A stretch of DNA of 64,000 nt, from assembly GCA_002269645.1 (NCBI GenBank), contig NIVC01000043.1, positions 1-64,000 on the forward strand. The letters run 5' to 3'. Source of the DNA: Macrostomum lignano (lineage: Eukaryota). A program made the position numbers and the translations under genes. Positions 2,268 through 56,744 of the stretch are shown piece after piece (within the stretch, counting starts at the first letter, position 1; each line of letters begins with the position of its first letter). Below the pieces are notes generated by a model that saw nothing but the letters and a program-made list of their open reading frames with translations, was not told where the DNA came from and made no database searches.

Positions 2268-2348
2268 AAGTGTTTTTATTTAGCTTTTAATAAAAAATTT
2301 TACACTACTACTTTTCAGACACTCTCTCTCTCTCTCTCTCTCTCTTCT

Positions 2349-8300: not shown

Positions 8301-11300
8301 TTTGTTTCGTGGAGAGGATTTCGATGATGTTCAGTTTCACGAAAGGATTTCCATGGTGTTCAGTTTCACGGAGAGGATTTCGATCATGTTCAGCTTCACG
8401 GAGAGGATTTCTGTTTCGCGGAGATAATTTATGATTGATTTCTGTTTTATGGAGACCATTTTGATGGATTTAAGTTTCAAGGAGAGGATTTCGAAGGAGT
8501 CCAGTTTCACGGAGAGGATTTCGATGGTTTTCAGTTGCACGGACAGGATTTCTGCTTCGCGGAGAGGATCTTGATGGATTTGGCATCTTCAATCAGTTAG
8601 AGAAGAGAGTAAAGAGAAGAATGAAAAGAGAAGAGAGATGAGATGATAGAAAACAGAGTAGAAATGAGTGGAGAGATTAGACATGACAGATGGGAGAAAA
8701 AGGGGAGTAAGGCGGGAACGAAGGAGAGAGAAGAGAAGAGGAGAGAGGAGATGAGAGGGGAGATATGAGATAGCAAATGGATACAAGAGAGATAATAGGA
8801 GAGAGAATAGATGAGGGATAAGAGCGTACAGAGGAAATAGAAGAGAGGGGAGAGTAGAGGAGAAAGAAAGAGTGAGATGAGGGGATGAGGGATGAGAGAG
8901 GAGGGAAGACAGGAGAGAGAAGAGAGGAGAAAAGAGGGGAGAAAGGAGAGAGAAGCGAAAGGAGAAGAGAGAGAGGAGAGAGGAGAGAGATGAAAGATCA
9001 TAGATGAGAGAGTTAAGAGAGGAAAGTAGTGCGGAGAGGAGAGATGAGAGATGCGATGAAAAGAGATGCGTGAGAAAATAAGAGAGAAGAGATTAGAGAT
9101 TAGAGATTAGAGAAGAGAGGGGAGAAGATGAAAGGAGCAAGGAGAGGAGAAAAGAGAGAATGGAGAGGATAGAAAAGAGAGAAGAGAAGAGACAGGGGAT
9201 AGTGGAAAGAAGGAAAGAAAGATGGGAGACAAGAAAGTAGAGTGTGAGAGCGTATTTGAGATATGAGAAATGAGAGCTGAGAGAAGAGAAAAGAGAAGAG
9301 AGAGAGAGGGTTAAGAGAGACGATAGATAAGTGAGTAGAGATGATATATGAGAGAGAAGAGAAGAGGGAGAGATAAGAGAGAAGAGAGGAGACAGGAGAC
9401 AGGAGAGGGTACAGACGAAAGACGAGGGAGAAGAGATAAATAAGGGAGTAGGGGTAGAGATAAGATGAGAGAGAGGAGAGAGAAGAGAGTCACGATAATA
9501 GCGAAGAGAGTAGAGAGGAGATATGATAGACGTGAGAGTCTTTGAGCTATGGTCTTTTAAAGGTTTTGTAAAGAATTTGGAGACGATTTGGAAGATAGGG
9601 TTCAAGGCATGGAATTTCAGTTGATGGATATTTCAGGAAATGGAATTCCGGTGATGGGAGTTCTTCCCCTTTCTCCTCCGAAGGAGGAGTTCCACTCGTC
9701 TATATACTAAAGCTGACGTCGTGGTCCGGTGGTAGGGTGGGCCGGTGGGCCGGGTTTGTCGACGATCTCCTCCTATGATTCTTGCAACTCAACTTTCAAA
9801 CCGGTACCAAAACATGTCAAATGTCCCGACGATGCTACAATTTAAAATTCATTTTCAAATTTCAATTTTAAGTGCTTCAAAAAAGCAGAAAACAGCACAA
9901 ACCAGACAGCCAGACCAGATGTCTATATATCGCATTCCATGGACTTCCCACTTGACGCTATTTTGTATGGTTGCGCCACAACTTTTCTCCTATCTCTGCA
10001 GTGTATTTCATTTCAGCTGGGGGAGGGTCGCCGGCACTTGAGAATTGGCGGCCTACTTGCTCAGTGTTAAAAAGGGGTGGAGGTGCACACTGCGCGAGAA
10101 TGGATGGCTTGATTTTTTAACTCATCACAGAGTGTACATTGCGCTCTGCAAGTAAGAAACGGGAAAACTTGCACCTTAATTTCTGCTTTTAATTTTCAAG
10201 CTACAGAAAAGTGAATCACACCGTTGGAAAGAGTTTGAAAAACTGAACAGAATGGTATAATTTTCTGTTCCGAAATCTCAACTGCATCAGAGCAATTTGT
10301 CATAGAAAATTTCTTGATTTCAATTTGTCAACCCTGGCTCACTGGCTGACTTTATAGATAATTGCGCAATGATATGGCTACTGATAAGTTTTCCTGCCTT
10401 TCAATGGGCAGTCCTGTGTATTTGTTGGACATTGAAATTCAATGCATCATCTTGCAAGCAGGCAGTGAACGTACACTCGATACTTCAATGCTATAAATCA
10501 GACAGTTTCAAACGCTAACTGTTCCTCGAGTTTTAAACTTTGAGAGGAGAGACTTATATTGCTGGAAAGATCTTGCAACGCTGAGTTCGGGGATATAAGT
10601 TGTTTGCTTTAAATATGAAAAGAAAAAGCACAGCATTTGAAAAACGATTTCCATACTTTTAACTTTCTGCAAAGATTGTACTCTAATCTGCAAAGATTGT
10701 TGGGGGAGGGTTCAACTTCTCACTGCTGCTGTGTATTGGAGGGTTGATTTAGATTGCGCAATGTTTTTGTTAACTTTACCTGAGGCTGATACTGACTGAC
10801 TGTGAAATCGGTTGCGCAATGAATTGATTCAATTAGTTCAATATTTTTATCTGTGCCTTTTAACACGAAGCTGTGCGTAGTTCTAACCCTAACCCTAACC
10901 CTAACCCTAATGAATCTGGCGAGTTGAGTTGTTTGACGGAAAAAATTCGATTAAGTCAAGTTTAGCGGAGACGATTTCAATGTTTAAATTCTGACGGAGA
11001 AGATTTCTGTTTCGTGGAGAGGATTTCGATGATGTTCAGTTTCACGAAAGGATTTCCATGGTGTTCAGTTTCACGGAGAGGATTTCGATCATGTTCAGCT
11101 TCACGGAGAGGCTTTCTGTTTCGCGGAGATAATTTATGATTGATTTCTGTTTTATAAAAACTATTTTGATGGATTTAAGTTTCAAGGAGAGGATTTCGAA
11201 GGAGTCCAGTTTCACTGAGAGGATTTCGATGGTTTTTAGTTGCACAGACAGGATTTTTGCTTCGCGGAGAGGATCTTGATGGATTTGGCATCTTCAATCA

Positions 11301-14300
11301 GTCAGAGAAGAGAGTAAAGAGAAGACTGAAAAGAGAAGAGAGAAGAGATGATAGAAAACAGAGTATAATTGAGTGGAGAGATTAGACATGACAGATTGGA
11401 GATGATAGGAGAGAGAATAGATGAGGGATAAGAGCGTACAGAGGCAATAGAAGAGAGGGGAGAGTAGAGGAGAAAGAAAGAGTGAGATGAGGAGATGAGG
11501 GATGAGAGAGCAGGGGAGAGAGGAGACAGGGAGAGTACAGACGAAAGACTAGGGAGAAGATATAAATAAGGTAGTAAAGATGAGAGGAGAGAGAGGAGAG
11601 AGAAGCGAAAGGAGAAGAGAGTGAGGAGAGAGGAGAGAGATGAAAGGAGCAAGGAAAGGAGAAAAGAGAGAATGGAGAGAATAGAAAAGAGAGAAGAGAA
11701 GAGACAGGGGATAGTGAAAAGGAGGAAGAAAGATGGGAGACAAGAAAGTAGTGTCAGAGCGTATATGAAATATGAGAAATGAGAGCAGAGAGAAGAGAAA
11801 AGAGAAGAGAGAGAGAGGGTTAAGAGAGACGATAGATAAGTGAGTAGAGATGACATATGAGAGAGGAGAGAAGAGGGAGAGATAAGAGTGAAGAGAGGAG
11901 ACAGAAGACAGGAGAAGGTACAGACGAAAGACGAGGGAGAAGAGATAAATAAGGGAGCAGGGGTAGAGATGAGATGAGAGAGAGGAGAGAGGAGATATGA
12001 GAGACTTGAGAGTCTTTGAGCTATGGTCTTTGAAAGATTTTGTAAAGAATTTGGAGACGATTTGGAAGATAGGGTTAAAGACATGGAATTTCAGTTGATG
12101 GATATTTCAGGGAATAGAATTCCGGTGATGGGAGTTCTTCCCCTTTCTCCTCGAGAGGAGGAGTTCCACTCGTATATACTAAAGCTGACGTCGTGGTCCG
12201 GTGGTAGGGTGGGCCGGTGGGCCGGGTTTGTCGACGATCTCCTCCTAGGATTCTTGCAACTCAACTTTCAAACCGGTACCAAAACATGTCAAATGTCCCG
12301 ACGATGCTACAATTTAAAATTCATTTTCAAATTTCAATTTTAAGTGCTTCAAAAAAGCAGAAAACAGCACAAACCAGACAGCCAGATGTCTATATATCGC
12401 ATTCCATGGACTTCCTTCCCACTTGACGCTATTTTGTATGGTTGCGCCACAACTTTTCTCCTATCTCTGCAGTGTATTTCATTTCAGCTGGGGGAGGGTC
12501 GCCGGCACTTGAGAATTGGCGGCCTACTTGCTCAGTGTTAAAAAGGGGTGGAGGTGCACACTGCGCGAGAATGGATGGCTTGATTTTTTAACTCATCACA
12601 GAGTGTACATTGCGCTCTGCAAGTAAGAAACGGGAAAACTTGCACCTTAATTTCTGCTTTAAGGTTGGGAAGATTGGAAATTATCCGAGGTCGGCTATAG
12701 GCTATTTTAATTCTGAAATTTTAATTTCTAAGATCCTCAAAAAAAGCAGAAAACTGCCTTTTTGACCCCCAATAACCTTCTTTTGCTACTCTGCCTGGGG
12801 CTTCAGCCAGTTTGTAAAAATAGCCACCCCAACCTCCGCCCGCGGGCCGCTGTGTATTGAGGGGTGGTGGGTGCGCGTGTTCTGCGTTCAATGCAAATAA
12901 AACCCCCGCGAGTTGAGGGGTTGAGTTAAATTTAATGATTCCCCCGGAACGGGGGGGTTGGGCTTGGGCTGAGTGTACATAGCTGTTGTAAACAGATAGA
13001 ACTGTGCCGAGATTCAATTGGTTTTATTATCGGCCCTGTGTATTAGCTGGGCAGTGAATTTCAATGAATAAACTTGCGAGCTTCTCTAGCAAGCAGTTGG
13101 GAAATCGGTAAATTTCAAACGCTAACTGTTCCTCGAGTTTTAAACTTTGAGAAGAGAAACTTATATTGCTGGAAAGATCTTGCAACGCTGAGTTCGGGGA
13201 TATAAGTTGTTTGCTTTAAATATGAAAAGAAAAAGCACAGCATTTGAAAAACTATTTCCATACTTTTAACTTTCTGCAAAGATTGTACTCAGTTTTGCGA
13301 GACGTAATAGATAAAGTTGGGGGGAGGGTTCAACTTCTCACTGCTGCTGTGTATTGGAGGGTTGATTTAGATTGCGCAATGTTTTTGTTAACTTTAACTG
13401 AGACTGGTACTGACTGACTGTGAAATCGGTTGCGCAATGAATTGATTCAATTAGTTCAATATTCTTATCAGTGCCTTTTAACACAAACCTGTGCGTAGTT
13501 CTAACCCTAACCCTAACCCTAACCCTAACCAATGAATCCGGAGTTGAGTTGTTTGACGGAAAAAATTCAATTGAGTCCAGTTTAGCGGAGACGATTTCAA
13601 TGTTTTAATTTTGACGGAGAGAATTTCTGTTTCGTGGAGATAATTTATGATTGATTTCTGTTTTATGGAGACCATTTTGATGGATTTAAGTTTCAAGGAG
13701 AGGATTTCGAAGGAGTCCAGTTTCACGGAGAGGATTTCGATGGTTTTCAGTTGCACGGACAGGATTTCTGCTTCGCGCGGAGAGGATCTTGATGGATTTG
13801 GCATCTTCAATCAGTTAGAGAAGAGAGTAAAGAGAAGAATGAAAAGAGAAGAGAGATGAGATGATAGAAAACAGAGTAGAAATGAGTGGAGAGATTAGAC
13901 ATGACAGATGGGAGAAAAAAGGGGAGTAAGGCGGGAACGAAGGAGAGAGAAGAGAAGAGGAGAGAGGAGATGAGAGGGGAGATATGAGATAGCAAAGGGA
14001 TACAAGAGAGATAATAGGAGAGAGAATAGATGAGGGATAAGAGCGTACAGAGGAAATAGAAGAGAGGGAAGAGTAGAGGAGAAAGAAAGAGTGAGATGAG
14101 GGGATGAGGGATGAGAGAGCAGGGGAGAGAGGAGAGAGAAGAGAGGAGAAAAGAGGGGAGAAAGGAGAGAGAAGCGAAAGGAGAAGAGAGAGAGGAGAGA
14201 GGAGAGAGATGAAAGATCATAGATGAGAGAGTTAAGAGAGGAAAGTAGTGAGGAGAGGAGAGATGAGAGATGCAATGAGAAGAGAGGCGTGAGAACATAA

Positions 14301-17300
14301 GAGAGAAGAGATTAGAGATTAGAGATTAGAGAAGAGAGGGGAGAAGATGAAAGGAGCAAGGAGAGGAGAAAAGAGAGAATGGAGAGGATAGAAAAGAGAG
14401 AAGAGAAGAGACAGGGGATAGTGGAAAGAAGGAAAGAAAGATGGGAGACAAGAAAGTAGAGTGTGAGAGCGTATTTGAGATATGAGAAATGAGAGCTGAG
14501 AGAAGAGAAAAGAGAAGAGAGAGAGAGGGTTAAGAGAGACGATAGATAAGTGAGTAGAGATGATATATGAGAGAGAAGAGAAGAGGGAGAGATAAGAGAG
14601 AAGAGAGGAGACAGGAGACAGGAGAGGGTACAGACGAAAGACGAGGGAGAAGAGATAAATAAGGGAGTAGGGGTAGAGATAAGATGAGAGAGAGGAGAGA
14701 GAAGAGAGTCACGATAATAGCGAAGAGAGTAGAGAGGAGATATGATAGACGTGAGAGTCTTTGAGCTATGGTCTTTTAAAGGTTTTGTAAAGAATTTGGA
14801 GACGATTTGGAAGATAGGGTTCAAGGCATGGAATTTCAGTTGATGGATATTTCAGGAAATGGAATTCCGGTGATGGGAGTTCTTCCCCTTTCTCCTCCGA
14901 AGGAGGAGTTCCACTCGTCTATATACTAAAGCTGACGTCGTGGTCCGGTGGTAGGGTGGGCCGGTGGGCCGGGTTTGTCGACGATCTCCTCCTAGGATTC
15001 TTGCAACTCAACTTTCAAACCGGTACCAAAACATGTCAAATGTCCCGACGATGCTACAATTTAAAATTCATTTTCAAATTTCAATTTTAAGTGCTTCAAA
15101 AAAGCAGAAAACAGCACAAACCAGACAGCCAGATGTCTATATATCGCATTCCATGGACTTCCTTCCCACTTGACGCTATTTTGTATGGTTGCGCCACAAC
15201 TTTTCTCCTATCTCTGCAGTGTATTTCATTTCAGCTGGGGGAGGGTCGCCGGCACTTGAGAATTGGCGGCCTACTTGCTCAGTGTTAAAAAGGGGTGGAG
15301 GTGCACACTGCGCGAGAATGGATGGCTTGATTTTTTAACTCATCACAGAGTGTACATTGCGCTCTGCAAGTAAGAAACGGGAAAACTTGCACCTTAATTT
15401 CTGCTTTTAATTTTCAAGCTACAGAAAAGTGAATCACACCGTTGGAAAGAGTTTGAAAAACTGAACAGAATGGTATAATTTTCTGTTCCGAAATCTCAAC
15501 TGCATCAGAGCAATTTGTCATAGAAATTTTCTTGATTTCAATTGTGAAAATGTTAAGTGGCTGGGGAGGGGTTTCATTAATTTCAATTCTGACTGTGCAA
15601 TGCACAAGCCTAGACTCTCCCTGTGCATTTGGGGAGGTGCATGGGCTATAGACTGTACTGTAGATCTTTACTGTACGCTTGCAAGTAACAAGGCCGACAT
15701 AAATGAATAAATTCGGCTAAATGCAGTGTACATTTGTGAGAACCGGGCTGCGACAGTGATGGCGCAATGCATATGCATCAACGGGGGCAGGCGATCGTTT
15801 CAGTAGCTCAATTTCGCTGGCCCAAGAGCTAGGGTTAGGGTTTCGATATGGAGTTCTGCAGATTCAACATTCCAACCATAGGATTCCGGGGATTTCAATT
15901 CAGCGGATTTCTCCTCCAACGGAGGAGTTCCACTTCTATATACTAAAGCTGACGTCGTGGTCCGGTGGGCCGGGTTTGTCGACGATCTCCTCCTAGGATT
16001 CTTGCAACTCAACTTTCAAACCGGTACCAAAACATGTCAAATGTCCCGACGATGCTACAATTTAAAATTCATTTTCAAATTTCAATTTTAAGTGCTTCAA
16101 AAAAGCAGAAAACAGCACAAACCAGACAGCCAGACCAGATGTCTATATATCGCATTCCATGGACTTCCCACTTGACGCTATTTTGTATGGTTGCGCCACA
16201 ACTTTTCTCCTATCTCTGCAGTGTATTTCATTTCAGCTGGGGGAGGGTCGCCGGCACTTGAGAATTGGCGGCCTACTTGCTCAGTGTTAAAAAGGGGTGG
16301 AGGTGCACACTGCGCGAGAATGGATGGCTTGATTTTTTAACTCATCACAGAGTGTACATTGCGCTCTGCAAGTAAGAAACGGGAAAACTTGCACCTTAAT
16401 TTCTGCTTTTAATTTTCAAGCTACAGAAAAGTGAATCACACCGTTGGAAAGAGTTTGAAAAACTGAACAGAATGGTATAATTTTCTGTTCCGAAATCTCA
16501 ACTGCATCAGAGCAATTTGTCATAGAAATTTTCTTGATTTCAATTGTGAAAATGTTAAGTGGCTGGGGAGGGGTTTCATTAATTTCAATTCTGACTGTGC
16601 AATGCACAAGCCTAGACTCTCCCTGTGCATTTGGGGAGGTGCATGGGCTATAGACTGTACTGTAGATCTTTACTGTACGCTTGCAAGTAACAAGGCCGAC
16701 ATAAATGAATAAATTCGGCTAAATGCAGTGTACATTTGTGAGAACCGGGCTGCGACAGTGATGGCGCAATGCATATGCATCAACGGGGGCAGGCGATCGT
16801 TTCAGTAGCTCAATTTCGCTGGCCCAAGAGCTAGGGTTAGGGTTTCGATATGGAGTTCTGCAGATTCAACATTCCAACCATAGGATTCCGGGGATTTCAA
16901 TTCAGCGGATTTCTCCTCCAACGGAGGAGTTCCACTTCTATATACTAAAGCTGACGTCGTGGTCCGGTGGGCCGGGTTTGTCGACGATCTCCTCCTAGGA
17001 TTCTTGCAACTCAACTTTCAAACCGGTACCAAAACATGTCAAATGTCCCGACGATGCTACAATTTAAAATTCATTTTCAAATTTCAATTTTAAGTGCTTC
17101 AAAAAAGCAGAAAACAGCACAAACCAGACAGCCAGACCAGATGTCTATATATCGCATTCCATGGACTTCCCACTTGACGCTATTTTGTATGGTTGCGCCA
17201 CAACTTTTCTCCTATCTCTGCAGTGTATTTCATTTCAGCTGGGGGAGGGTCGCCGGCACTTGAGAATTGGCGGCCTACTTGCTCAGTGTTAAAAAGGGGT

Positions 17301-20099
17301 GGAGGTGCACACTGCGCGAGAATGGATGGCTTGATTTTTTAACTCATCACAGAGTGTACATTGCGCTCTGCAAGTAAGAAACGGGAAAACTTGCACCTTA
17401 ATTTCTGCTTTTAATTTTCAAGCTACAGAAAAGTGAATCACACCGTTGGAAAGAGTTTGAAAAACTGAACAGAATGGTATAATTTTCTGTTCCGAAATCT
17501 CAACTGCATCAGAGCAATTTGTCATAGAAAATTTCTTGATTTCAATTGTGAAAACGTTAAGTGGCTGGGGAGGGGTTTCATTAATTTCAATTCTGACTGT
17601 GCAATGCACAAGCCTAGACTCTCCCTGTGCATTTGGGGAGGTGCATGGGCTATAGACTGATTTTCATATTGAGTGATTGGCTGGAGATAATATTGAGATT
17701 AAATAAATGAATCACCGCAGTGTAAACTGCTTTTTTGACCCCCAATAACCTTCTTTTGCCACTCTGCCTGGGGCTTCAGCCAGTTTGTAAAAATAGCCAC
17801 CCCAACCTCCGCCCGCGGGCCGCTGTGTATTGAGGGGTGGTGGGTGCGCGTGTTCTACGTTCAATGCAAATAAAACCCCCGCGTGTTGGCGGGTTGAGTT
17901 AAATTTAATGCTTCCCCCGTAACGGGGGTTGGGCTTGGACTGAGTGTACATAGCTGTTGTACAGTGTAAAAAGATAGATAGAACTGTGCCGAGATTCAAT
18001 TGGTTTTATTATCGGCCCTGTGTATTAGCTGGGCAGTGAAATTCAATGAATAAACTTGCGAGCTTCTCTAGCAAGAAGTCGGGAAATCGGTAAATTTCAA
18101 ACGCTAACTGTTCCTCGAGTTTTAAACTTTGAGAGGAGAAACTTATATTGCTGGAAAGATCTTGCAACGCTGAGTTCGGGGATATAAGTTGTTTGCTTTA
18201 AATATGAAAAGAAAAAGCACAGCATTTGAAAAACTATTTCTATACTTTTAACTTTCTGCAAAAATTGTACTCAGTTTTGCGAGACGTAATAGATAAAGTT
18301 GGGGGAGGGTTCAACTTCTCACTGCTGCTGTGTATTAGAGGGTTGATTTAGATTGACTGACTGACTGTGAAATCAGTTGCGCAATGAATTGATTCAATTA
18401 GTTCAATATTTTTATCAGTGCCTTTTAACACAAACCTGTGCGTAGTTCTAACCCTAACCCTAACCCTAACCAATGAATCCGGAGAGTTGAGTTGTTTGAC
18501 GGAAAAAATTCGATTGAGTCCAGTTTAGCGGAGACGATTTCAATGTTTTAATTTTGACGAAGAGGATTTCTGTTTCGTGGAGAGGATTTCGATGGTGTTC
18601 AGTTTCGTGGAGAGGATTTCGATGGCGTTCACTTTCGTGGAAAGGATTTCGATGATGTTCAGTTTCACGGAGAGGATTTCGATGATGTTCAGCTTCACGG
18701 AGAGGATTTCTGTTTCGCGGAGATAATTTATGATTGATTTCTGTTTTATGGAGACCATTTTGATGGATTTAAGTTTCAAGGAGAGGATTTCGAAGGAGTC
18801 CAGTTTCACGGAGAGGATTTCGATGGTTTTCAGTTGCACGGACAGGATTTCTGCTTCGCGGAGAGGATCTTGATGGATTTGGCATCTTCAATCAGTTAGA
18901 GAAGAGAGTAAAGAGAAGAATGAAAAGAGAAGAGAGATGAGATGATAGAAAACAGAGTAGAAATGAGTGGAGAGATTAGACATGACAGATGGGAGAGAAG
19001 AGGGGAGTAAGGCGGGAACGAAGGAAGAGAAAAGAGAAGAGGAGAGAGGAGTTGAAGGGAGAGGATATGAGAGAGGAGATATGAGATAGCAGAGAGGAGA
19101 CAGGAGAGAAAAGAAAGGAGGGATAAGAGCGTACAGAGGCAATAGAAGAGAGGAAAGAGAGGAGAGAGGTGAGAGGTGAGAGGAGAGAGATGAAAGATCA
19201 GAGATCAGAGATTCAAGAGTAGAAAGTAGTGAGGAGAAAGAAGAGGGTAAAGATGAGAGTGCAGAGAGGAGAGAAACGAGAGGAGACAGGTGATAGAAAA
19301 GAGTGTAAAAAAACAGGATATAAGAAAGGAGAGGGTGAGAGTGAGAGCATATAGGAAAGTGTAAAAGGGGAGAGAGAATAGATAAGTGAGTAGAGAAGAG
19401 ATATGAGAGAGGAGAGAGGAGAGATTAGAGAAGAGATGAGGGGAGATAAGAGGAGAGAAGAGGGAATGGAGAGGAGAGAAAAGAGAGGAGAGGAGACAGG
19501 TGATGCAGTAGAAAGGGAAGAAAGATGGTAGATAAGAAAGGAGAGGGTGAGAGCGTATAAGAGATACGAGTAATGAAAGCAGAGAGAAGAGAGAAAAGGG
19601 AAGAGAGAAAGTAGAGCGGAGACGATAGATAAGTGAGTAGAGATGAGATATGAGAGAGGAGAGAAAAGGGGAGAGATAAGAGAGAAGATATGAGAGTAGA
19701 CAGGAGAGGGTACAGACGAAAGGCGAGGGAGAAGAGATAAATAAGGGAGTAGAGATGAGATATGAGAGAGAAGAGATAAGCGAGAAGAGTAGGAATAGAG
19801 GAGAGAGAGAAGCGAGAGAAGGGAGAGAGGAGGGAGAAGAGAGATGAAAGATCAGAGATGAGAGAGATGAAAGTGTAGAGAGGAGTAATTAGTGAGGAGA
19901 AAGAAGAGAGTAAAAATAAAAATCAGAGCGCAGGGCGCAAGAGATGAGAGATGGGAGTTGATAGATTGTAGAGGATTTGGAGATGATTTGGAAGATGGGA
20001 TTCAATTCATTGAATTTCAGCTGATAGGAGTTCTTCCCCTTCAGAATTCCGGTGATGGGAGTTCTTCCCCTTTCTCCTCCAGAGGAGGAGTTCCACTCG
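2349..20099 (+). mobile_element. Tandem head-to-tail array of 8 non-autonomous Helitron-like units (family A)
   Basis: Each unit starts TCTATATACTAAAGCTGACG (Helitron-type 5' TC end) and ends with hairpin CTCCTCC-nnn-GGAGGAG followed by TTCCACTCG, with a T just past the array at 20100. Units: 2349(or 2353)-4823, 4824-7269, 7270-9698, 9699-12172, 12173-14917, 14918-15934, 15935-16936, 16937-20099. No TSD and no RepHel coding sequence seen. Confidence 0.8.
8166..8205 (-). repeat. Interstitial telomeric repeat (TTAGGG)n inside a Helitron unit (longest of nine plus-strand TAACCC tracts)
   Basis: (CTAACC)n tracts at 3533-3560, 6966-6993, 8166-8205, 10883-10910, 13501-13530, 18448-18471, 47332-47347, 49677-49694 and 51469-51484. 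Confidence 0.9.
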
Positions 20100-23364: not shown

Positions 23365-24204
23365 GGTCTATCTATCCTTACGGATATTTTTTGCGTAAGT
23401 TTACCTCTGGGCCGTTGGTTAAACTAGGAGTAAATCCAATTTGAATTCGCGCCAAAAGGAACGTCGTTTAATAATCGATAAACAACCGATGAGCTATATT
23501 TAAACATCACAAAAGCAGTGGCTCTGAGTGAATTGAGTACTTACCAGAGTCGATAACTAATTGAAAAGAATGGGAAAAATTGCCACCTCGCTAATGCATT
23601 CTGCTGCGATATTGGGTCTTCTAATGAACTTTGCATAATTGCGAATCCTTAAAGTCAAGAAGGCATTTTTGTGTTCAAACTTTTTTCTGCATCAGTTGCC
23701 AAGCAAATCGCCGTTCTAGAAGACTTAGAAGTTCGTGGTTAATATTTGCTATAATTTTCCCCTTGACCAATTCATAGAAATTTATTGAGTAGCTGAACTT
23801 CAAGGTGCTCTGCTCTGATAAGGCACGCTCGCTCCCTTCCTACTCAAAGACTCTAATTTCTCGGACTCTGAGACCAAGCTATTGGTTAACTCTGAGCATT
23901 TTTATTAAACAGGCGTTTCTTATTCGTGTCGCGAGTCAGAAGCAGCGCGAGTGTCGGACAAGCAAACAGAATAACAGAGAGGCCATCTTCTATGTTGTTT
24001 ATTTAATGTCCAAGTCTGTAAACTCTGCTCGCTGCAAAACTTATCTGTCTGTCAATCAGCTGTCATGCCAAGTATCTAACTTTAAAAAGCTCTGCGATTC
24101 TGTATCTACTCAATATTTCCTACGGCTTGAACATAGCCTTGATTTGGTCTCGCCAATCTCATGCCCCTGACTCATATGATCACCATTATTATCCATAAAT
24201 CTTA

Positions 24205-25030
24205 CCTACCTGACTCATCCAATCTCACCTGCCTGACTCATCCAATCTCATCTACCTGACTCATCCAATCTCATCTACCTGACTCATCCAATCTCATCTA
24301 CCTGACTCACCCAATCTCATCTACCTGACTCATCTAATCTCATCTACCTGACTCACCCAATCTCATCTACCTGACTCACCCAATCTCATCTGCCTGACTC
24401 TTCCAATCTTATCTACCTGACTCATCCAATCTCATCTACCTGACTCACCCAATCTCACCTGCCTGACTCATCCAATCTCATCTACCTGACTCATCCAATC
24501 TCATCTACCTGACTCACCCAATCTCATCTGCCTGACTCATCCAATCTCATCTACCTGACTCATCCAATCTCATCTACCTGACTCATCCAATCTCATCTAC
24601 CTGACTCATCCAATCTCATCTACCTGACTCACCCAATCTCATCTGCCTGACTCATCCAATCTCACCTGCCTGACTCATCCAATCTCATCTACCTGACTCA
24701 TCCAATCTCACCTATCTGACTCACCCAATCTCACCTATCTGACTCATCCAATCTCATCTGCCTGACTCATCCAATCTCATCTACCTGACTCATTCAACCT
24801 CACCTACCTGACTTATTTTACCTCATCTACCCGACTCATTTAACCTCACCTACCTGACTCACCCAATCTCATCTACCTGACTCATTCAATCTCATCTGCC
24901 TGACTCACCCAATCTCAACTATCTGACTCATCCAATCTCATCTGCCTGACTCACCCAATCTCACCTGCCTGACTTATCCAGTCTCATCTGCCTGACTCAC
25001 CCAATCTCATCTACCTGACTCATTTAATCT
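24205..25030. repeat. 23-bp minisatellite (cctgactcatccaatctcatcta), about 36 copies
   Basis: Direct inspection; most units contain TGACTCA and CCAAT. Confidence 0.95.
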
Positions 25031-25475: not shown

Positions 25476-26980
<1,505 letters not shown>

Positions 26981-27538: not shown

Positions 27539-28033
27539 ACAGAGTGAAACAGAGTGAAACAGAGTGAAACAGAGTGAAACAGAGTGAAACAGAGTGAAAC
27601 AGAGTGAAACAGAGTGAAACAGAGTGAAACAGAGTGAAACAGAGTGAAACAGAGTGAAACAGAGTGAAACAGAGTGAAACAGAGTGAAACAGAGTGAAAC
27701 AGAGTGAAACAGAGTGAAACAGAGTGAAACAGAGTGAAACAGAGTGAAACAGAGTGAAACAGAGTGAAACAGAGTGAAACAGAGTGAAACAGAGTGAAAC
27801 AGAGTGAAACAGAGTGAAACAGAGTGAAACAGAGTGAAACAGAGTGAAACAGAGTGAAACAGAGTGAAACAGAGTGAAACAGAGTGAAACAGAGTGAAAC
27901 AGAGTGAAACAGAGTGAAACAGAGTGAAACAGAGTGAAACAGAGTGAAACAGAGTGAAACAGAGTGAAACAGAGTGAAACAGAGTGAAACAGAGTGAAAC
28001 AGAGTGAAACAGAGTGAAACAGAGTGAAACAGA
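27539..28033. repeat. (ACAGAGTGAA)n 10-bp minisatellite, about 49 perfect copies
   Basis: Direct inspection; lies about 330 bp upstream of the neuropeptide ATG. Confidence 0.99.
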
Positions 28034-28367
28034 GGCAGACAGATACAGACACAGCAGGAGAGAAGCAGTCCAGAAAAAGGCACGGAGGGAGTGGCAAAAG
28101 AATTGAAGCGAAGGTCTGCGTGGGCAGCCAGTGAGCAGTGAGATGTGGGAACTGGCTGAGCGAGCTATTATAGGACCAACTCCCTGGCGCAGGAGCAGGA
28201 TCTCACAATTCCCAGTCTGCGACTCCACTTGGCACCTCGTGCAGCCACAAACAGCAGCAATTTCTTTTAAAGAAGTTTATTCTCTCCACAATTTAATTTA
28301 ATTTAAGCAACTTTCAAGTCTGGGCTGCTTAGTTTAAAAAAAGTGACTTTCTGCCGTTGCTTCCGAA

Positions 28368-31109
28368 ATGCTGCTTCATCTGCGGCCTCAAGTGCTATTG
28401 CTGCTGACTCTGGCTTTGACTGCCACTAGCTGTAAGTATCGCTCATCTGGTCATATTGTGATGCCATGTTCTGCTCATCTGGTCATTTAATAGTCTACTC
28501 ATCTAGTAATGTAATGGCTATTTATCTAGTCATGTAATGGTCTGCTCATCTAGTCATGTAATGGTCTGCTCATCTAGTCATGTAATTGTCTGCTCATCTA
28601 TTCATGTAATTGTCTGCTCATCTAGTCATGTAATGGTCTACTCATCTAGTCATGTAATGGTCTACTCATCTAGTCATGTAATGGTCTACTCATCTAGTCA
28701 TGTAATGGTCTGCTCATCTAGTCATGTAATGGTCTACTCATCTAGTCATGTAATGGTCTACTCATCTAGTCATGTAATGGTCTACTCATCTAGTCATGTA
28801 ATGGTCTGCTCATCTAGTCATGTAATGGTCTGCTCATCTAGTCATGTAATGGTCTGCTCATCTAGTCATGTAATGGTCTGCTCATCTAGTCATGTAATGG
28901 GCTATTTATCCAGTCATTTAATGCTTTGTTTACCCGCTTGTATCAGCAGCGCAATATTAGGCTTACTAAAGTATAATTCCTTTCCTAATTCATCTAAGCA
29001 TGCCATCATCAGACAGTCTACTTATCTGTTCATCCATTATCTCCCAACAAAATAAGATTTCGTTGCAGTTTTGGCTGGGCTAAATTGCACACGATCATAA
29101 TTGATGCATCCACTCGATCCTATTGACAACTTCTTTAGATTGTTTTAATTGATGGCCCCTCAATCGCCAGCTTGTTAATAAATTTTCTACTCCCCAGTCA
29201 AACAGAAAATAACTTCCTCAGCGATTGCAGCGAGAAACCGAATCGGGACAGCTGTAGCGTGCCAGCCAGTCCCCCAGCAGCTCGTTAAAGAACTCACTAA
29301 AAGACATGATAAAATCTCTTAAGTGAGACAAATACATTCTTTACAACGTTGGCCTGCCCTAGCTGTCAGACTATGAATTATGAAGAGTACAAGAAAGGCT
29401 CTTCTCAGGCAGACTTGTTCGCCCGCACAGTTGATAATCTGATTTGTCTGTCTCTCTGTTTAGAATGCTATTGACGATCGTCCACGATGCCATCCTGAAC
29501 TCCATCTTTCTACTTCCATTTCGCACCTTCTCTGCCATTTAGAAACAATTTTTAACACATTTTCAAGCAAAGATTGAATAGTGCTTTCTCAAAATTTTGT
29601 TGCTGCGGAATGCGTCAGAGTTTCAATGAGGAAGAGGAAGAGGATGAGGCGGCTGAGTAGTATCAAAATTTGCTCACGATCGAGTCCTAGTAGCGGTATT
29701 TGATACAATAAGTTTCATTGCTACATCGTCTTCAAAAAGACACTGTGTGCTGCAGTAAACACTGCATACTGATGTCCCTTCAGAAATTCTCTACGCCATA
29801 GAAATTAGTTCAAGCTCGGTTTTTCTATGATAATACAATGGATAAATAATCAGCGGTCCCAGTGCGTGACAACGATTGTCTGGCGAGCGCCGGTAGGTTT
29901 TCTAGGCGCGAGCCATAGACAAATCGTTGTCACGTGCTGCGACCGCTGATTCTTTGCATTGTTTTTCTGTTTGACGATCCTACAGACAATGCATTGTTTG
30001 TAGTAATGGATTGTTATGCATTAAAAATGTGAATAATGATCGTCAAATTGCTAAACAATAACTTGGATGAAGAATTGTTCTGGTGGCAGCAATAAAAAAC
30101 ATGCTGTCCGAAAATTAGCGAATATACCCAAAAATGCGGAATTCACAGCCCTTCCTTCGCTTATCCTCTTTCAGATAATGGGATCGCTTCAGCTGAGGAG
30201 AAAGCAGACGTAAGAGTGCATGTAAATTACGAAAATTACGAATGTTCAATTGACTCAAGTGACTCAACTTGTTTTTTACTGCAGGTCCATTCGTTTGGTT
30301 GGAACTCGGTTGGCAGAAATGAACCTTCGGGTGACGAACTAACGCCTGTAGATGAGGCTGATCACATTGAAGCCAAAGAGAAGAAGTGGTTGGGAAATGG
30401 AATCAGAACGAAGCGCTGGCTTGGAGACGGGATCAGAACGAAGCGCTGGCTTGGAGACGGGATCAGAACCAAACGTTGGCTCGGAGACGGGATCAGGACC
30501 AAACGTTGGCTCGGAGACGGGATCAGGACCAAACGTTGGCTCGGAGACGGGATCAGGACCAAACGTTGGCTCGGAGACGGGATCAGGACCAAACGCTGGC
30601 TCGGAGACGGGATCAGGACCAAACGCTGGCTCGGAGATAGGATCAGGACCAAACGCTGGCTCGGAGACGGGATCAGGACCAAACGCTGGCTCGGAGATAG
30701 GATCAGGACCAAACGTTGGCTCGGAGACGGGATCAGGACCAAACGCTGGCTCGGAGATGGGATCAGGACCAAACGCTGGCTCGGAGACGGGATCAGGACG
30801 AAGCGCTGGCTCGGAGACGGGATCAGGACCAAACGCTGGCTCGGAGATGGGATCAGGACCAAACGTTGGCTCGGAGACGGGATCAGGACCAAACGCTGGC
30901 TCGGAGACGGGATCAGGACCAAACGCTGGCTCGGAGATGGGATCAGGACCAAACGTTGGCTCGGAGACGGGATCAGGACCAAACGCTGGCTCGGAGATGG
31001 GATCAGGACCAAACGCTGGCTCGGAGACGGGATCAGGACGAAGCGCTGGCTCGGAGACGGGATCAGGACGAAGCGCTGGCTCGGAGACGGGATCAGGACA
31101 AAGCGCTGA
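28368..31109 (+). CDS. Prepro-neuropeptide (multi-copy WLGDGIRT precursor), join(28368..28431,30175..30209,30285..31109), 307 aa
   Basis: Exon 1 encodes a hydrophobic signal peptide MLLHLRPQVLLLLTLALTATS with donor gtaagt (phase 1). Exon 2 (ctttcag|...|gtaaga) and exon 3 (tactgcag|) join in frame. An acidic spacer precedes KK-WLGNGIRT-KR and 23 further KR-flanked peptides, ending KR-stop. Repeat variation is at third codon positions in this frame. Confidence 0.85.
28441..28920. repeat. 24-bp intronic minisatellite (ctcatctagtcatgtaatggtctg/a)
   Basis: Direct inspection; begins just after the exon 1 donor of the neuropeptide gene. Confidence 0.95.
29848..29951. other. About 104-nt foldback (MITE remnant or pre-miRNA-like hairpin) in intron 1
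   Basis: aatcagcggtcccagtgcgtgacaacgattgtctggc pairs with gccatagacaaatcgttgtcacgtgctgcgaccgctgatt; an inner gcgcc/ggcgc and tag/cta stem continues towards the loop. Confidence 0.7.
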
Positions 31110-32574
31110 TCCTGAGGAATCGGTAAGATCTTTTGCGACGCGCTATAGAGCGCAGCATTTTTTAAACTTGCTTTTTTAACAGACACTGAATAGTAAATGC
31201 GTTGCTTTGGTTCATTTCAGATGGGAGCCACTGAAGCCTGCTGATCTTCTGAAGTGATTTTGATTTCAATGCGCTCAGCAGTGCACTGTTTTGAACTTTG
31301 AATTAAGGTGTCCTTGCAAAAACTTTGACACTTACAAACGAATCCCATCTTCATTGCTGCCGCATATTATTCTATTTTCGGTTTAATAAATTCGAAAAAA
31401 ATCGGTCGAAAAGACGTCCTTCGAGCCTGCCGCAGTGCATCGGAATGCATATACTTTGGCTGCAGAGAGCCTGCTTTTTGCTTCTTTTTTTAAAAAGCTC
31501 ATATTTGCGCTCACTAGCTCATCATCAGATTATCTACTATAAGAGTTACGTCAGGCCTTGCGTGACGTCCACAAGTACTGCGTATCTTAACACAGACAAC
31601 CTACCGATGCATTATCAAATCAAAAGGTACACTTCCATAATTGCTAATAATATTAAAACTCACGGCGAAGGCTCCATTAAGACCTGAGCTGTGCTAATAT
31701 AGTAGAGGGCCGAGTGGTCTGTGGCATTAAATGTGCCGCTCGTAAACTAACAACACGTCTGTGATTTTGTCTCAAACTATCAGTCTTATCTTATCTTATC
31801 GGGACACGGTGTAGCGATGCTATTTTTAGCAGTGTCATATCGGTTTTATTACTTTCATTTGTAGTAGTGAAAATCAAAAGCGTCCATGTTGACCAAGACC
31901 GAAACATTTCTATTTACGATTAGGCGAAATAATAATAAACACTGTGCCAAAAAGTACTGTCTGCGCGTATGACACTAAATTATAATCAATAAATAAATAT
32001 CACTAATGGTACAAATTGATACAAAGAACGTTTGCTATCCAAGAAGTATCTGAATGGTAGACCTTCCCCTGGTATAAATTGGTAACTCAGCTTGCTAATG
32101 GCACTGTTCGTCAGTTCTGTGGGCCTTAGAAACTAGGGAAAAGAAAGCTACATCAGTGCACAGTTCGAATAGCAGTTCGGTGTCTGCCCACCTATTTATA
32201 AATTATGCAACCTTTTAGAGCGCAAGAAAATAGCAACGGTTGTCATGCCATCGGCACGAAGTGATCTGATGGATCAGATGTAGAATACAGACACTTTCTA
32301 TCGTTTGTACACAGTACCTTTAGATCGTTGAACGTTTTTATGCTAGATCAACGTGCACTTTTATATAAATTGATTCTATCAAGCAAAATTTGTCCTAACT
32401 GTTTTGCAAGATGAGTGAAGAACGCAAATTAATTACTACTAATGTACGCAAAAAATGGAGTTCTCTTCACTTTTTCCTACTACTAAGTAGGCAAATGTGG
32501 GAATTTGAATATATTTTAATTATTACTCAATAGGCGTGTTTAGTTTTCATGTGCTTCAACAACAACAGCAGCAG

Positions 32575-33121
32575 GAAGAGAAGGTGGTGAACTTGATCTG
32601 GGTGCCCCCGCACTGCAGCTTGGCAGGAAACGAGCGGCGAAAGAGGCGTCGACTCGGGCCCAGGACGGCATCAGAGTTCCGGCCAGCAGCAACAAGAAGT
32701 ACATCCAGAGCAAGCTGGGCAGAGACAACGGCAGAAACCACAAGAGAAGCAGGGAAACGTACGGAGAACAGGGAGTGGCGCCCCAGCCGAAGGGCCTGAG
32801 CAAGCAGGATGAGGTTGACTTCAGACGTTTCAGGAGTGGCCACTCTATGGACCCTGCAGAGTACAGGAAGCGTATTGGTAGACAAGAGGAGGGTTGGTTT
32901 ACGAGGTGAGCATGGAGGCCGAGCCGCTTGAGCATGTCATGGAATGCCCCGCCACGCGCAGCCTGAGGGAGAAGCTGGACCTGCATGAGTTACGGGACTT
33001 GAGTAGGAGGCCAGGGAACGCGGTCAAATGCTGGAAGAAGATCCATCCGGAAGGACGTCACTAGTGGCTCGGTGCTAGGCGCACTCACACACATACACAC
33101 AGCAGCAGCAGCAACAACAAC
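32575..33121 (+). mobile_element. 5'-truncated, degenerate non-LTR retrotransposon 3' end (I-group-like: RNase H, R-x-GH motif, CCHC remnant)
   Basis: VNLIWVPPHCSLAGNER (RNase H WVPxHxxxxGNE motif, 32599-32634), then a frameshift, then FRRFRSGHSMDPAEYRKRIG and LEHVMECP, stop near 33064, and a (CAG)n(CAA)n tail. Confidence 0.75.
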
Positions 33122-46383: not shown

Positions 46384-49300
46384 TCTCCTAATACTAAAAC
46401 CGACGCGATGTTTGTCTGTCTGTATGTCTGTCTGTCTGTATGTAGCAAGTGAACTCCTACAATTCTGCCAAGTCAACGTCGAAACTTATATGGGAAAACT
46501 GCAAATTTTCCGGAGCAGGCTTTAGGCTATTTTAATTTTTAATTTTCACATTTTAACATCCCTAAAAAAGCAGAAAACTGCTTTTTTAACCCCCAATAAC
46601 CTTCTTTGGTCACTCTGCCTGGGGCTTCAGCCAGTTTGTAAAAATAGCCACCCCAACCTCCGCCCGCGGGCCGCTGTGTATTGAGGGGTGGTGGGTGCGC
46701 GTGTTCTGCGTTCAATGCAAATAAAACCCCGCGTGTTGGGGGGTCGAGTTAAATTTAATGCTTCCCCCAGAACGGGGGTTGGGCTTGGGCTGAGTGTACA
46801 TAGCAGTTGTACAGTGTAAATAGATAGACTGTGTCGAAATTCATTTGGTTTTATTATCGGCGCCTTTTTTCTCCATAGGCAGCCAGCCCTGTGTATTAGC
46901 TTGGCAGTGAAATTCAATGAATTGCGACTGCGAGCTTCTCTAGCAAGCAGTCGGGAAATCGGTAAATTTCAAACGCTAACTGTTCCTCGAGTTTTAAACT
47001 TTGAGAGGAGAGACTTATATTGCTGGAAAGATCTTGCAACGCTGAGTTTGGGGATATAAGTTGTTTGCTTTAAATATGAAAAGAAAAAGCACAGCATTTA
47101 AAAAACTATTTCCATACTTTTAACTTTCTGCAAAAATTGTACTCAGTTTTGCGAGACGTAATAGATAAAGTTGGGCGTATTGGAAGGGGGTCTGCCGCTG
47201 CGTATTGGAGGGTTGATTTAGATTGCGCAACCGTTTATTTAACTTTAAATAAGACTGATACTGTCTGACTGAGAAATGGTTTGCGCAATAAATTGATTCA
47301 ATTAATTCAACACGCAGCTCTGTGCAGCTCGAACCCTAACCCTAACCAATGAATTCTGAGAGTTAAGTTCTTTTTGACAGAGAAAATTTCGATTGAGTCC
47401 AGTTTCACGGAGTATTCTGATGGTTTTCGGTTTCACGGAGAGGATTTCTTTTTCGTGGAGAGAATCTAGATGTATTTCTGTTTTACGGAGACGATTTTGA
47501 TGGATGTCAGTTTCACTCAGAGGATTTCCATGGAGCCCAGTTTCACGGAGAGGATTTCTGTTTGGCGGATTGGATTTCGAAAGGAGTCCAGTTTCACGGA
47601 GAGGGTTTCTGTTTCGCGGAGAGGATTTCTATTTCGCGGAGAGGATTTCTGTTTCATGGAGGGATTTTGATGGATTTGGTATCTTCAGTCAGTCAGTAAA
47701 GAGAGTAAAGAGAAGAGTGAAAAGAGAAGAGAGAAGAGTGAAAAGAGAAGAGAGAAGAGTGAAAAGAGAAGAGAGAAGAGATTATAGAAAAGAGAGTAGA
47801 GATGAGAGAGGACAGATTAGACATGACAGATGGGAGAGAAGAGGGGAGTAAGGCGGGAACGAAGATGGAGAGAGAAGAAAAGAGGAGAGAGGAGATGAGA
47901 GGGAAGATATGAGATAGCAGAGGGAGACAGGAGAGAGGAGAGGAGAGAGAAGAGAGGAGCTGAGAGTAGAGGAGAAAGAAATAGTGAGATGAGGCATGAG
48001 GGATGAGAGATGAGAGAGGAGAGAAGAGAGGAGAGAGGAAAAAACAGGGGATAAAGGAGACAGGAGAGAAAGACGAAAGACGAGGGAGAAGAGATAAATA
48101 AGGTGGTAGAGATGAGAGACGTGAGAGGAGAGAAAAGAGAAGAGAGGAGACAGAAGAATCTGAGTCTGGACAATGGCAGTCAGTTTTTGCGAACAGGGAA
48201 AACAAGATATGGTATTTGAAAGGCTTTACAGAGGATTTGGAGATGATTTGGAAGATGGGATTCAAGTCATGGAATTTCCGCTGATGGATTTCAGGGAATG
48301 GAATTCCGGTGATGGGAGTTCTTCCCCTTTCTCCTCCAGAGGAGGAGTTGGCCTCGTCCTAATACTAAAACCGACGCGATGTTTGTCTGTCTGTATGTCT
48401 GTCTGTCTGTATGTAGCAAGTGAACTCCTACAATACTGCCAAGTCAGCGTCGAAACTTATATGGGAAAACTGCAAATTTTCCGGAGCAGGCTTTAGGCTA
48501 TTTTAATTTTTAATTTTCACATTTTAACATCCCTAAAAAAGCAGAAAACTGCTTTTTTAACCCCCAATAACCTTCTTTGGCCACTCTGACTGGGGCTGCA
48601 GCCAGTTTGTAAAAATAGCCACCCCAACCTCCGCCCGCGGGCCGCTGTGTATTGAGGGGTGGTGGGTGCGCGTGTTCTGGGTTCAATGCAAATAAAACCC
48701 CCGCCTGTTGGGGGGTTGAGTTAAATTTAATGATTCCCCCAGAACGGGGGTTGGGCTTGGGCTGAGTGTACATAGCAGTTGTACAGTGTAAATAGATAGA
48801 CTGTGTCGAGATTCATTTGGTTTTATTATTGGCAGCCCTGTGTATTAGTTTGGCAGTGAAATTCAATGAATAAACTTGCGAGCTTCTCTAGCAAGCAGTC
48901 GGGAAATCGGTAAATTTCAAACGCTAACTGTTCCTCGAGTTTTAAACTTTGAGAGGAGAAACTTATATTGCTGGAAAGATCTTGCAACGCTGAGTTCGGG
49001 GATATAAGTTGTATGCTTTAAATATGAAAAGAAAAAGCACAGCATTTAAAAAACTATTTCCATACTTTTAACTTTCTGCAAAAATTGTACTCAGTTTTGC
49101 GAGACGTAATAGATAAAGTTGGGCGTATTGGAAGGGGGTCTGCCGCTGCGTATTGGAGGGTTGATTTAGATTGCGCAACCGTTTATTTAACTTTAAATAA
49201 GACTGATAGATTCATTTGGTTTTATTATTGGCAGCCCTGTGTATTAGTTTGGCAGTGAAATTCAATGAATAAACTTGCGAGCTTCTCTAGCAAGCAGTCG

Positions 49301-52300: not shown

Positions 52301-52455
52301 ACAAGATATGGTATTTGAAAGGCTTTACAGAGGATTTGGAGATGATTTGGAAGATGGAATTCAAGTCATGGAATTTCAGCTGATGGATTTCAGGGAATGG
52401 AATTCAGGTGATGGGAGTTCTTCCCCTTTCTCCTCCAGAGGAGGAGTTGGCCTCG
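46384..52455 (+). mobile_element. Tandem array of 3 non-autonomous Helitron-like units (family B)
   Basis: 5' end TCCTAATACTAAAAC followed by (GTCT)n; 3' hairpin CTCCTCC-AGA-GGAGGAG then TTGGCCTCG. Units 46384-48356, 48357-50531 (with a 399-bp internal duplication at 48809-49606) and 50532-52455. Left flank ends in A. Confidence 0.8.
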
Positions 52456-55323
<2,868 letters not shown>

Positions 55324-56079: not shown

Positions 56080-56744
56080 ATGAACATAGCCGATGATCTT
56101 AAAAGTTGCGCTGACGTGAATCAAAAGGGTAAATATGCCTTAGAATTTATGAATAAGTTTTGCGTGCTGCGATCCAACCGCTCTCCAGATACGTCAGCAG
56201 CCTGTCTCTGGAACTGCGCCAGGTCAAATCAAACGGCTGCTATTTTTTCGCCGCCGATTCGTCCTATCCAGACGACAAGTTGAGCGATAGCGAAGGCGAT
56301 GACGACGACGATGACGGTGTCAGCCTGGCCAGCTCGGAGCCCATCGACCGGCTTTGGCCGGCGGCCGCAAAACTCGCCGCCGACATGTCGATGTCGCCAG
56401 ACGAGGTCGACGGAGCGCCGGCGGACCTGTTGGCGGCGCAACTGCTCGAACGGTTAGCTGACAACGATCTGTCCGGAGCGATTCGTCACTGCCGACTGCT
56501 GCTCACCTTCCAGCCGCATAGCGGAGAGGCTCGGGAGCTGCTGGCCACCCTGTCGGAGCGCGACCAGCAGCAGCGAGACGATCTGCTCGAGTCGAACTCG
56601 GAATCGACGGACACCGAATCGGAGACCTACTTCAGATACTTTCACCACGATCAGCACGGTCGGAATGAGGACGAGGCGGAGAGTAGGCGGACTTCGTCTG
56701 ACGCGTCGGATCACTTTCTAGATGCTTCGTCGTCCTCTGACTGA
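56080..56744 (+). CDS. Acidic protein with an ERICH2-like helical domain; tentative join(56080..56128,56272..56744)
   Basis: Phase-1 donor gtaaat at 56129 and acceptor tatccag| at 56271 join in frame. APADLLAAQLLERLADNDLSGAIRHCRLLLTFQPHSGEARELL resembles, from memory, the ERICH2 AP-x-EL...A..LC..IL.YEP.N.EA.EF segment; flanked by Asp/Glu/Ser-rich tracts. The true start is uncertain. Confidence 0.6.

Follow-up and report, generated by a model that had tools for sequence, protein, structure and literature searches.

The question raised by this stretch of Macrostomum lignano DNA, positions 1 to 64,000 of the forward strand of contig NIVC01000043.1 (assembly GCA_002269645.1; these 64,000 nucleotides are referred to as the window), is whether a 30-bp tandem array found in it is one more minisatellite of a repeat-rich region or the coding part of a gene, and, if it is a gene, which kind of product it could give. 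An earlier note, made from the letters alone, had proposed a neuropeptide precursor that releases 24 peptides of the type WLGDGIRT. The analysis presented here indicates that a three-exon gene for a secreted precursor holding 24 octapeptide copies is very probably real. The identity that we favour for its product is a 307-aa secreted polyprotein that would be processed by convertases as a multi-copy precursor, most likely of a lineage-restricted flatworm neuropeptide. To this reading, taken as a whole, we assign a probability of roughly 0.6.

The coding sequence (924 nt, 307 aa) was read and translated from three joined exons on the plus strand, 28368-28431, 30175-30209 and 30285-31109. The parts of the predicted gene are the following:

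28368..28431, plus strand: exon 1, 64 nt, with the ATG and 21 codons; its final base opens a Tyr codon
28432..30174, plus strand: intron 1, 1743 nt, gtaagt...tttcag
30175..30209, plus strand: micro-exon 2, 35 nt, encoding (Y)NGIASAEEKAD
30210..30284, plus strand: intron 2, 75 nt, gtaaga...ttttttactgcag
30285..31109, plus strand: exon 3, with the acceptor ttttttactgcag/GT (the slash marks the exon border)
30285..30386, plus strand: 5' part of exon 3, an acidic pro-region, VHSFGWNSVGRNEPSGDELTPVDEADHIEAKE, which ends in KK (30381-30386)
30387..31106, plus strand: 24 tandem 30-nt units, each encoding W-L-G-[D/N]-[G/R]-I-R-T plus K-R
31107..31109, plus strand: TGA stop, immediately 3' of the last KR
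31385..31390, plus strand: candidate polyadenylation signal AATAAA, identified by its motif only, the first one downstream of the stop and 276 nt after it

The splice signals of this model are strong. The donor of exon 1 reads AGCT/gtaagt, and the micro-exon lies between an acceptor with a pyrimidine tract, ctctttcag/AT, and the donor CAGAC/gtaaga. An in-frame ATG was looked for in exon 3 and none was found, therefore an upstream exon is required. Exon 1 (64 nt) spliced straight to exon 3 would be out of frame, so the reading frame between both exons could only be restored via the micro-exon, exons 1 and 2 together measuring 99 nt. All models starting within 10 kb upstream were enumerated, allowing donors of the form GT[AG]AG and acceptors of the form [CT]AG with at least 10 pyrimidines in the preceding 14 positions. 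The strong sites found in this region, 9 donors and 22 acceptors, combine into five in-frame models. A signal-peptide-like start is present in one of the five, the model that begins with the exon 28368-28431, while the other four start from 27231 or 27237 and have a first exon of 75 aa that is non-secretory. The exon coordinates that had been proposed, the frame through the 35-nt micro-exon, the array and the terminal stop were all recovered base for base.

Two more elements were observed within and next to the predicted gene. Intron 1 contains a 24-bp minisatellite (28466-28923, 19 copies, 93% matches) without codon-phase bias. Right after the stop there is a possible intron of the 3' untranslated region (31124-31220, plus strand), with the donor GGAATCG/gtaaga and, 97 nt on, the acceptor ttcatttcag/ATGG.

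The product of the joined exons would be laid out as MLLHLRPQVLLLLTLALTATS, followed by YNGIASAEEKADVHSFGWNSVGRNEPSGDELTPVDEADHIEAKE-KK and by 24 x (octapeptide + KR). Its N-terminus, MLLHLRPQVLLLLTLALTATS/YN, is signal-peptide-like, with a cut predicted after A-T-S by a heuristic of our own applied to the exon joined by predicted splicing. The n-region is basic (Arg6 and His4), the h-region comprises 9 residues with a mean Kyte-Doolittle hydropathy of 3.12, and A-x-S occupies positions -3/-1. This result is supportive, not conclusive, the heuristic passing 4.8% of random window open reading frames (ORFs). The pro-region that would follow contains, in its entire length, 11 D/E versus 5 K/R.

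The peptide array comprises 21 octapeptides WLGDGIRT, two WLGDRIRT and one WLGNGIRT, the latter in the first unit, which is preceded by KK. A KR pair follows 24 of the 24 units and every junction reads R-T-K-R/W. Tandem Repeats Finder placed the array at 30402-31108 (23.6 copies of period 30, 94% matches, score 1190). At the nucleotide level, the units occur in the order ABCDDDEEFEGEHIEJEEJEHIIK, where each letter is one unit type; divergence grows towards the 5' end of the array, and the interior units have become homogenised. Such an order is what unequal exchange would be expected to produce in an array whose peptide is under selection. The computed monoisotopic mass of WLGDGIRT is 916.477 Da ([M+H]+ 917.484, [M+2H]2+ 459.246), and the computed [M+H]+ values of WLGNGIRT and WLGDRIRT are 916.500 and 1016.564.

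Many of the tandem arrays in the window have several open frames, and the 30-bp array itself is open in four of the six (two stops break frame +2, and in one of the antisense frames every unit contains a stop). The distribution of the variation among the units is more informative than openness. The 11 nucleotide unit types encode only three peptide types. Among units 2-24, seven of the 30 columns are variable, and six of these seven lie at codon position 3 of the WLGDGIRT frame (hypergeometric P = 0.002; 0.006 after phase choice). Seven variant types are synonymous and one is non-synonymous in the plus frame, versus five and three in the best alternative frame, which is antisense, and 1:7 or worse in the other four frames. 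Furthermore, the diverged first unit carries eight base changes with respect to the consensus, which alter one residue (D to N) in the plus frame and four in the antisense frame. No codon-phase bias was found in the other minisatellites of the window whose period is a multiple of 3, which served as controls. Due to the codon-3 bias, the conservation of the first unit and the unbiased control arrays, the 30-bp array is coding rather than another minisatellite of this repeat-rich window, and the peptide frame is under purifying selection. Selection falls on the peptide and its cleavage sites rather than on the spacers, both within the array and in the comparison with the M. lignano relatives described below.

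The codon variants had been described as synonymous in this frame only. The variants are present and seven of the eight are synonymous, but the exclusivity does not hold, as the antisense wobble-aligned frame has five of eight synonymous. That frame is open along the whole array:

30362-31186, minus strand: antisense ORF (RLVLIPSPSQ)n, 274 aa, complete with ATG and stop, covering the whole array

Neither a signal peptide nor relatives were found for this product, and we judge the ORF to be a by-product of the wobble-aligned frame opposite the coding strand.

Relatives of the precursor were sought by an exhaustive HMMER search of 1.84 billion representative proteins with exon 3 as the query, which gave 330 matches, and a motif filter was applied to 151 retrieved proteins. 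The motif is carried by four of these 151, all of them UniRef entries of Macrostomum lignano:

A0A1I8IJ38 (P0001): 1007-aa chimeric model named 'ANK_REP_REGION domain-containing protein', with SSSHEVSGYDDDERLTKK and then 11 x W[IL]GDGFRS-KK
A0A1I8FF56 (P0003): 710-aa chimeric model, also named 'ANK_REP_REGION domain-containing protein', with GVHEV[AT]DYRQETKK and then WLSDGFRN-KK repeats
A0A1I8FXQ2 (P0044): short protein named 'Secreted protein', with GVHEV[AT]DYRQETKK and then WLSDGFRN-KK repeats
A0A1I8FTA2 (P0151): short protein named 'Uncharacterized protein', added by profile search

Most of the 330 matches are unrelated periodic proteins and were dropped by the motif check; P0073, with (NLGTGIRIKR)n, was not counted as a relative because the Trp is missing. 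The match to A0A1I8IJ38 has E = 3.7e-49 and 61% identity over 119 aa (phmmer). In BLASTP, the spliced N-terminus plus two units matched A0A1I8FXQ2 with E = 3e-10, and the alignment reaches 18 residues into the pro-region, to the shared KK. When the window peptide is aligned with the relatives, the W, D, G, R and K columns are invariant, and the family follows the motif W-[LI]-[GS]-[DN]-G-[IF]-R-[TSN] plus K-[KR], with a 10-residue period and KK before unit 1. Repeats of the type W[IL]GDGFRS-KK or WLSDGFRN-KK are encoded by no fewer than three or four loci of M. lignano.

The relatives share with the window gene the octapeptide plus dibasic pair, the KK before the first unit, an acidic stretch ahead of it and the 10-residue periodicity; the parts that align are 45-62% identical. 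On the other hand, they have Phe for Ile at position 6, S or N for T at position 8 and KK for KR, carry at most 11-12 copies instead of 24, and are without a published name or function. Conservation between them and the window gene extends to W1, D4, G5, R7 and the dibasic pair, whereas the pro-regions have diverged. A peptide and dibasic pair that are kept while the spacer diverges read as the signature of a processed precursor. The WLGDGIRT-type family was seen otherwise only in Macrostomum lignano proteins. Hence, the proposal that the peptides are unrecognised and possibly undescribed stands as far as names are concerned, with no named match, but the precursor is not an orphan, as these uncharacterised M. 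lignano UniProt entries are related to it.

Moreover, a word-indexed search with the full spliced precursor in a protein collection of 5.8 billion clusters gave no exact or near copy, so the gene is unannotated in that collection. Metagenome contigs gave no match by a protein-guided scan or by a degenerate two-unit DNA pattern, and no genomic-context records were obtained by exact look-up for A0A1I8FXQ2, A0A1I8IJ38, A0A1I8FF56 and A0A1I8FTA2. The family is mis-annotated in the chimeric M. lignano models. These models, A0A1I8IJ38 and A0A1I8FF56, contain translations of further minisatellites as well, such as (RSASRDAGKM)n.

As to how such a precursor would be processed, established knowledge of the secretory pathway was applied to the sequence. 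The 21 N-terminal residues would act as a signal peptide, directing co-translational entry into the endoplasmic reticulum and being removed there. A subtilisin-like proprotein convertase (PC), of the PC2/PC1 type or of the furin type, would then cut the chain behind KK67 and behind all 24 R-T-K-R sites, and a carboxypeptidase E/D-type enzyme would trim the C-terminal K and R. Each precursor could in this way free 24 octapeptides (21 WLGDGIRT, 2 WLGDRIRT and 1 WLGNGIRT). Peptidylglycine amidating monooxygenase needs a C-terminal Gly, and the peptides are expected to be non-amidated because there is no Gly before KR. The WLGDGIRT-type peptide would finally act on a receptor as a neuropeptide or peptide hormone. 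The architecture of a prohormone-convertase substrate, which the earlier note had recognised, was borne out by the signal-peptide-like N-terminus, the acidic pro-region and the 24 dibasic-flanked peptides, and the prediction of non-amidated peptides agrees with the residues ahead of KR.

The sequence R-X-K/R-R is the consensus of furin and the PCs. Arg7 of the peptide and the following T-K-R form R-T-K-R at every junction, and this Arg is kept in the relatives (R-S-K-K, R-N-K-K); the conserved Arg7 may thus serve cleavage as well as receptor binding. R-T-K-R being a furin-type site, processing need not be restricted to neurons. In M. lignano, a PC2 homologue is neuronally expressed and essential after hatching, its knock-down being lethal to hatchlings (PMC4490696), and planarian PC2 processes many prohormones (PMC2953531).

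Multi-copy precursors are known in several groups, among them the FMRFamide-type precursors of molluscs and those of cnidarian Antho-RFamide, which hold tens of copies. In spiralians, non-amidated multi-copy peptides come from the pedal peptide and achatin-type precursors. Fungal Kex2-processed repeat proteins and alpha-factor-type precursors have a signal peptide, a pro-region and tandem KR-ended peptides which are cut by a homologue of kexin/furin. The window precursor shares with the invertebrate multi-copy precursors (FMRFamide-type, Antho-RFamide; planarian npp/spp, PMC2953531) what looks like a signal peptide, the acidic spacer, the many identical peptides separated by dibasic pairs, the synonymous variation between units and a presumed PC2-type processing, whose enzymes are known in flatworms. 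It differs from them in an unrelated peptide, in the lack of a C-terminal Gly/amide and in having the dibasic pair as the only spacer between copies. The accepted way to recognise proneuropeptides in sequence data is by a signal peptide together with repeats of x(3-10)-K[K/R], and many multi-copy precursors are lineage-restricted (Platynereis, PMC3890597). The W[I/L] and WLD peptides of that worm (PMC3890597) are, like WLGDGIRT, short, non-amidated, present in several copies and flanked by K[K/R], and many such peptides are lineage-restricted and were recognised by precursor architecture only. However, the WI peptides are MIP-like, x-W-x6-7-W-[G/I/L], and WLD contains Cys, whereas the only Trp of WLGDGIRT is at position 1 and Cys is absent from it. 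No relationship in sequence was detected between WLGDGIRT and the Platynereis WI/WLD peptides, pedal peptide or achatin-type peptides.

Membership in named families was also considered. The named flatworm families (FLP/RFamide, NPF/NPY, RL/RMamide, Wamide, pedal peptide, planarins and others; PMC2953531) were rejected, as there is no Gly before KR and no match in the family list. The Wamide/MIP peptides have a C-terminal Trp-amide (W-G-dibasic, usually W-x6-7-W), whereas the single Trp of WLGDGIRT is N-terminal and its C-terminus is Thr without Gly. The fungal Kex2-repeat or alpha-factor-type precursors resemble the window precursor in their working principle and in the high copy number that is possible, and this likeness does not amount to membership: the relatives belong to a flatworm, and the window gene, with its 1.7-kb intron and satellite-rich context, does not fit a fungal pheromone precursor and lacks X-Ala/X-Pro dipeptide spacers. 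Two Pfam hits to the whole protein turned out to be repeat artefacts. DAB2_SBM (PF21792, 75.8 bits) is the sum of 24 weak partial matches, with none of the stretches passing alone, and in Spt5 CTD (PF12815, 37.9 bits) the best stretch covers 5 of the 72 profile positions. No true Pfam family was found for the precursor.

Concerning the literature, WLGDGIRT-type strings or six-residue fragments of them had no relevant match in 8.3 million full texts, a scope that does not extend to a prior listing in McVeigh et al. 2009 or Koziol et al. 2016. The text matches came only from adeno-associated virus capsid papers and, for 'LGDGIR', from a single cathelicidin review. No Macrostomum neuropeptide catalogue was found in the searchable literature, and the strings KRW, KKW, GDG and DGF are absent from all the supplementary prohormone tables of the 51 Schmidtea prohormones (PMC2953531). 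Regarding these data, the WLGDGIRT-type family appears to be unnamed, and the class of precursor, that of multi-copy neuropeptides and hormones, is already familiar. It is also conceivable, with slightly less than an even chance, that WLGDGIRT, W[IL]GDGFRS and WLSDGFRN form an undescribed family of non-amidated neuropeptides, limited to macrostomids or early-branching rhabditophorans, with very high-copy precursors, furin-type R-x-K-[KR] junctions and an orphan receptor.

Several results weigh against a neuropeptide precursor. The signal-peptide heuristic, which 4.8% of the window's random ORFs led by an ATG also pass, would be expected to produce about 0.2 false positives for five models. The N-terminal similarity to the M. 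lignano relatives is not significant (shuffle p = 0.13-0.31), tblastn of these relatives against the window matched the repeat array only, the flanks being unlike, and the relatives carry KK, a weaker convertase site than KR. WLGDGIRT is without the protective modifications that are common in neuropeptides (amide, pyroglutamate), and the R-X-K-R context suits constitutive furin in any secretory cell no less than it suits neurons. As to the source of the window, the relatives by themselves would point to a macrostomid or related flatworm. Apart from the unlike flanks, this reading has against it that an acidic ORF of the window at 56160-56744 has no homologue in the 5.8-billion-cluster collection, M. 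lignano included, and no Pfam domain, so that the source is probably another assembly than the M. lignano one behind the UniProt entries. Of the neuropeptide precursor proposed in the earlier note, the secreted-peptide architecture is upheld, but the R-T-K-R furin-type sites make a neuropeptide only the most likely among several secreted-peptide roles.

This leads to the alternative that the same precursor and the same convertase processing operate in non-neural secretory cells, where the product could be a defence or antimicrobial peptide, a pheromone, a component of the seminal fluid or a gland product. We consider it unlikely. The R-T-K-R at every junction is preferred by ubiquitous furin-type convertases, the unmodified peptides and their very high copy number recall multi-peptide immune or pheromone precursors, the sole source name of a relative, 'Secreted protein', is silent on neurons, and many gland-specific secreted products exist in Macrostomum (PMC4490696). 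Nevertheless, a net-neutral peptide of eight residues, with one D and one R, is atypical for an antimicrobial peptide, the strict conservation of W1, D/N4, G5 and R7 suggests a specific receptor, and in spiralians a signal peptide with short dibasic-flanked repeats mostly belongs to neuropeptides (PMC3890597; PMC2953531).

It is highly improbable that the protein is secreted but uncleaved, with its 24 decapeptide repeats folding as a beta-rich solenoid or fibre in a structural, adhesive or mucus component. AlphaFold2, run on exon 3 with no alignment, gave a regular 8-residue strand per unit in a beta-hairpin repeat, the best model reaching a mean predicted local distance difference test score (pLDDT) of 64 and a predicted template modelling score of 0.67. 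However, only two of the five models were above pLDDT 60, the others being at 28-38, and perfect repeats are known to yield models of this sort even where no evidence backs them. In the PDB, Foldseek detected no neighbour at E <= 0.001 (best E 0.02, template modelling score 0.29) and the sequence search of the PDB was empty, so that with a low-confidence model and no structural neighbours the precursor was not assigned to the beta-solenoids or other structural repeats. Furthermore, the K-R/K-K pair that closes every unit is kept in the relatives while its neighbours vary, which fits a cleavage site and is hard to explain for a solenoid, and the stop comes exactly after the last KR.

The least probable explanation, that there is no functional plus-strand gene and the array is an open minisatellite, possibly in a decayed pseudogene copy, or that the antisense ORF 30362-31186 (minus strand) is the true product, would agree with the open frames of this and the other arrays, with the complete antisense ORF and its five of eight synonymous variants and with the absence of an exact or near precursor copy from the 5.8-billion-cluster collection, but it has against it the third-position bias and 7:1 synonymous excess that are specific to the plus frame and not seen in the control arrays, the first unit with one altered residue versus four, the strong GT/AG signals, signal-peptide-like exon and acidic spacer that all lie on the plus strand, the conservation of the plus-frame peptide in independently predicted M. 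lignano proteins, and an antisense product without signal peptide or relatives whose openness is expected from the wobble alignment.

The predicted neuropeptide precursor lies in a window rich in repeats. The tandem arrays have periods of 48, 23, 4, 10, 24, 21 and 80 bp, and large segmental repeats are also present. A 10-bp satellite, ACAGAGTGAA, extends over 27539-28034 with 49.6 copies of 100% identity and ends about 330 nt upstream of the precursor ATG; such perfect homogeneity over 50 copies is unusual. Upstream of it there are (TCTA)n with about 380 copies (25476-26978) and a 23-bp array (24198-25030). Large near-identical segmental repeats occupy 2346-19800 and 46400-52500, with the pairs 2346-5316 versus 9696-12660 (99.3%), 14889-16657 versus 15908-17659 (98.3%) and 46421-48394 versus 50555-52493 (92.6%). 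Purines predominate on the plus strand of this segmental-repeat complex, where the open sense ORFs are rich in K/E/R and the antisense ones in S/L.

Two other ORFs of the window can be mentioned:

32880-33061, plus strand: short ORF with EAEPLEHVMECPATRSLREKLDLHELRDL
56160-56744, plus strand: acidic ORF of 194 aa with a DDDDDD tract and a Ser/Asp-rich tail, which looks like a genuine exon

The first one resembles the Cys/His motif found near the C-terminus of the ORF2 proteins of non-LTR (long terminal repeat) retrotransposons, and it is probably a truncated fragment of a long interspersed nuclear element. Pfam gave no match for the minus-strand ORF 32540-32986, which overlaps its start, a scan that covered that antisense ORF only. 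In all, Pfam scans of 10 ORFs of the window other than the precursor gave no match, and the Rfam and tRNA scans of the window were empty.

Regarding the meaning of these results, the annotation of satellite-rich genomes misses or mangles genes of this type, as the relatives in M. lignano are either fragmentary or part of chimeras of 700-1000 aa labelled as ankyrin-repeat proteins. The finding would be useful for flatworm neurobiology and for the repair of annotation, and it leaves general concepts unchanged, as lineage-restricted multi-copy precursors are common in spiralians. WLGDGIRT would offer a simple and abundant target that antibodies, mass spectrometry (at m/z 917.48), RNA interference and receptor deorphanisation could address. 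If the precursor is real and neuronal, it would add a lineage-specific signalling peptide to a flatworm clade whose member Macrostomum is a model of regeneration and sexual selection.

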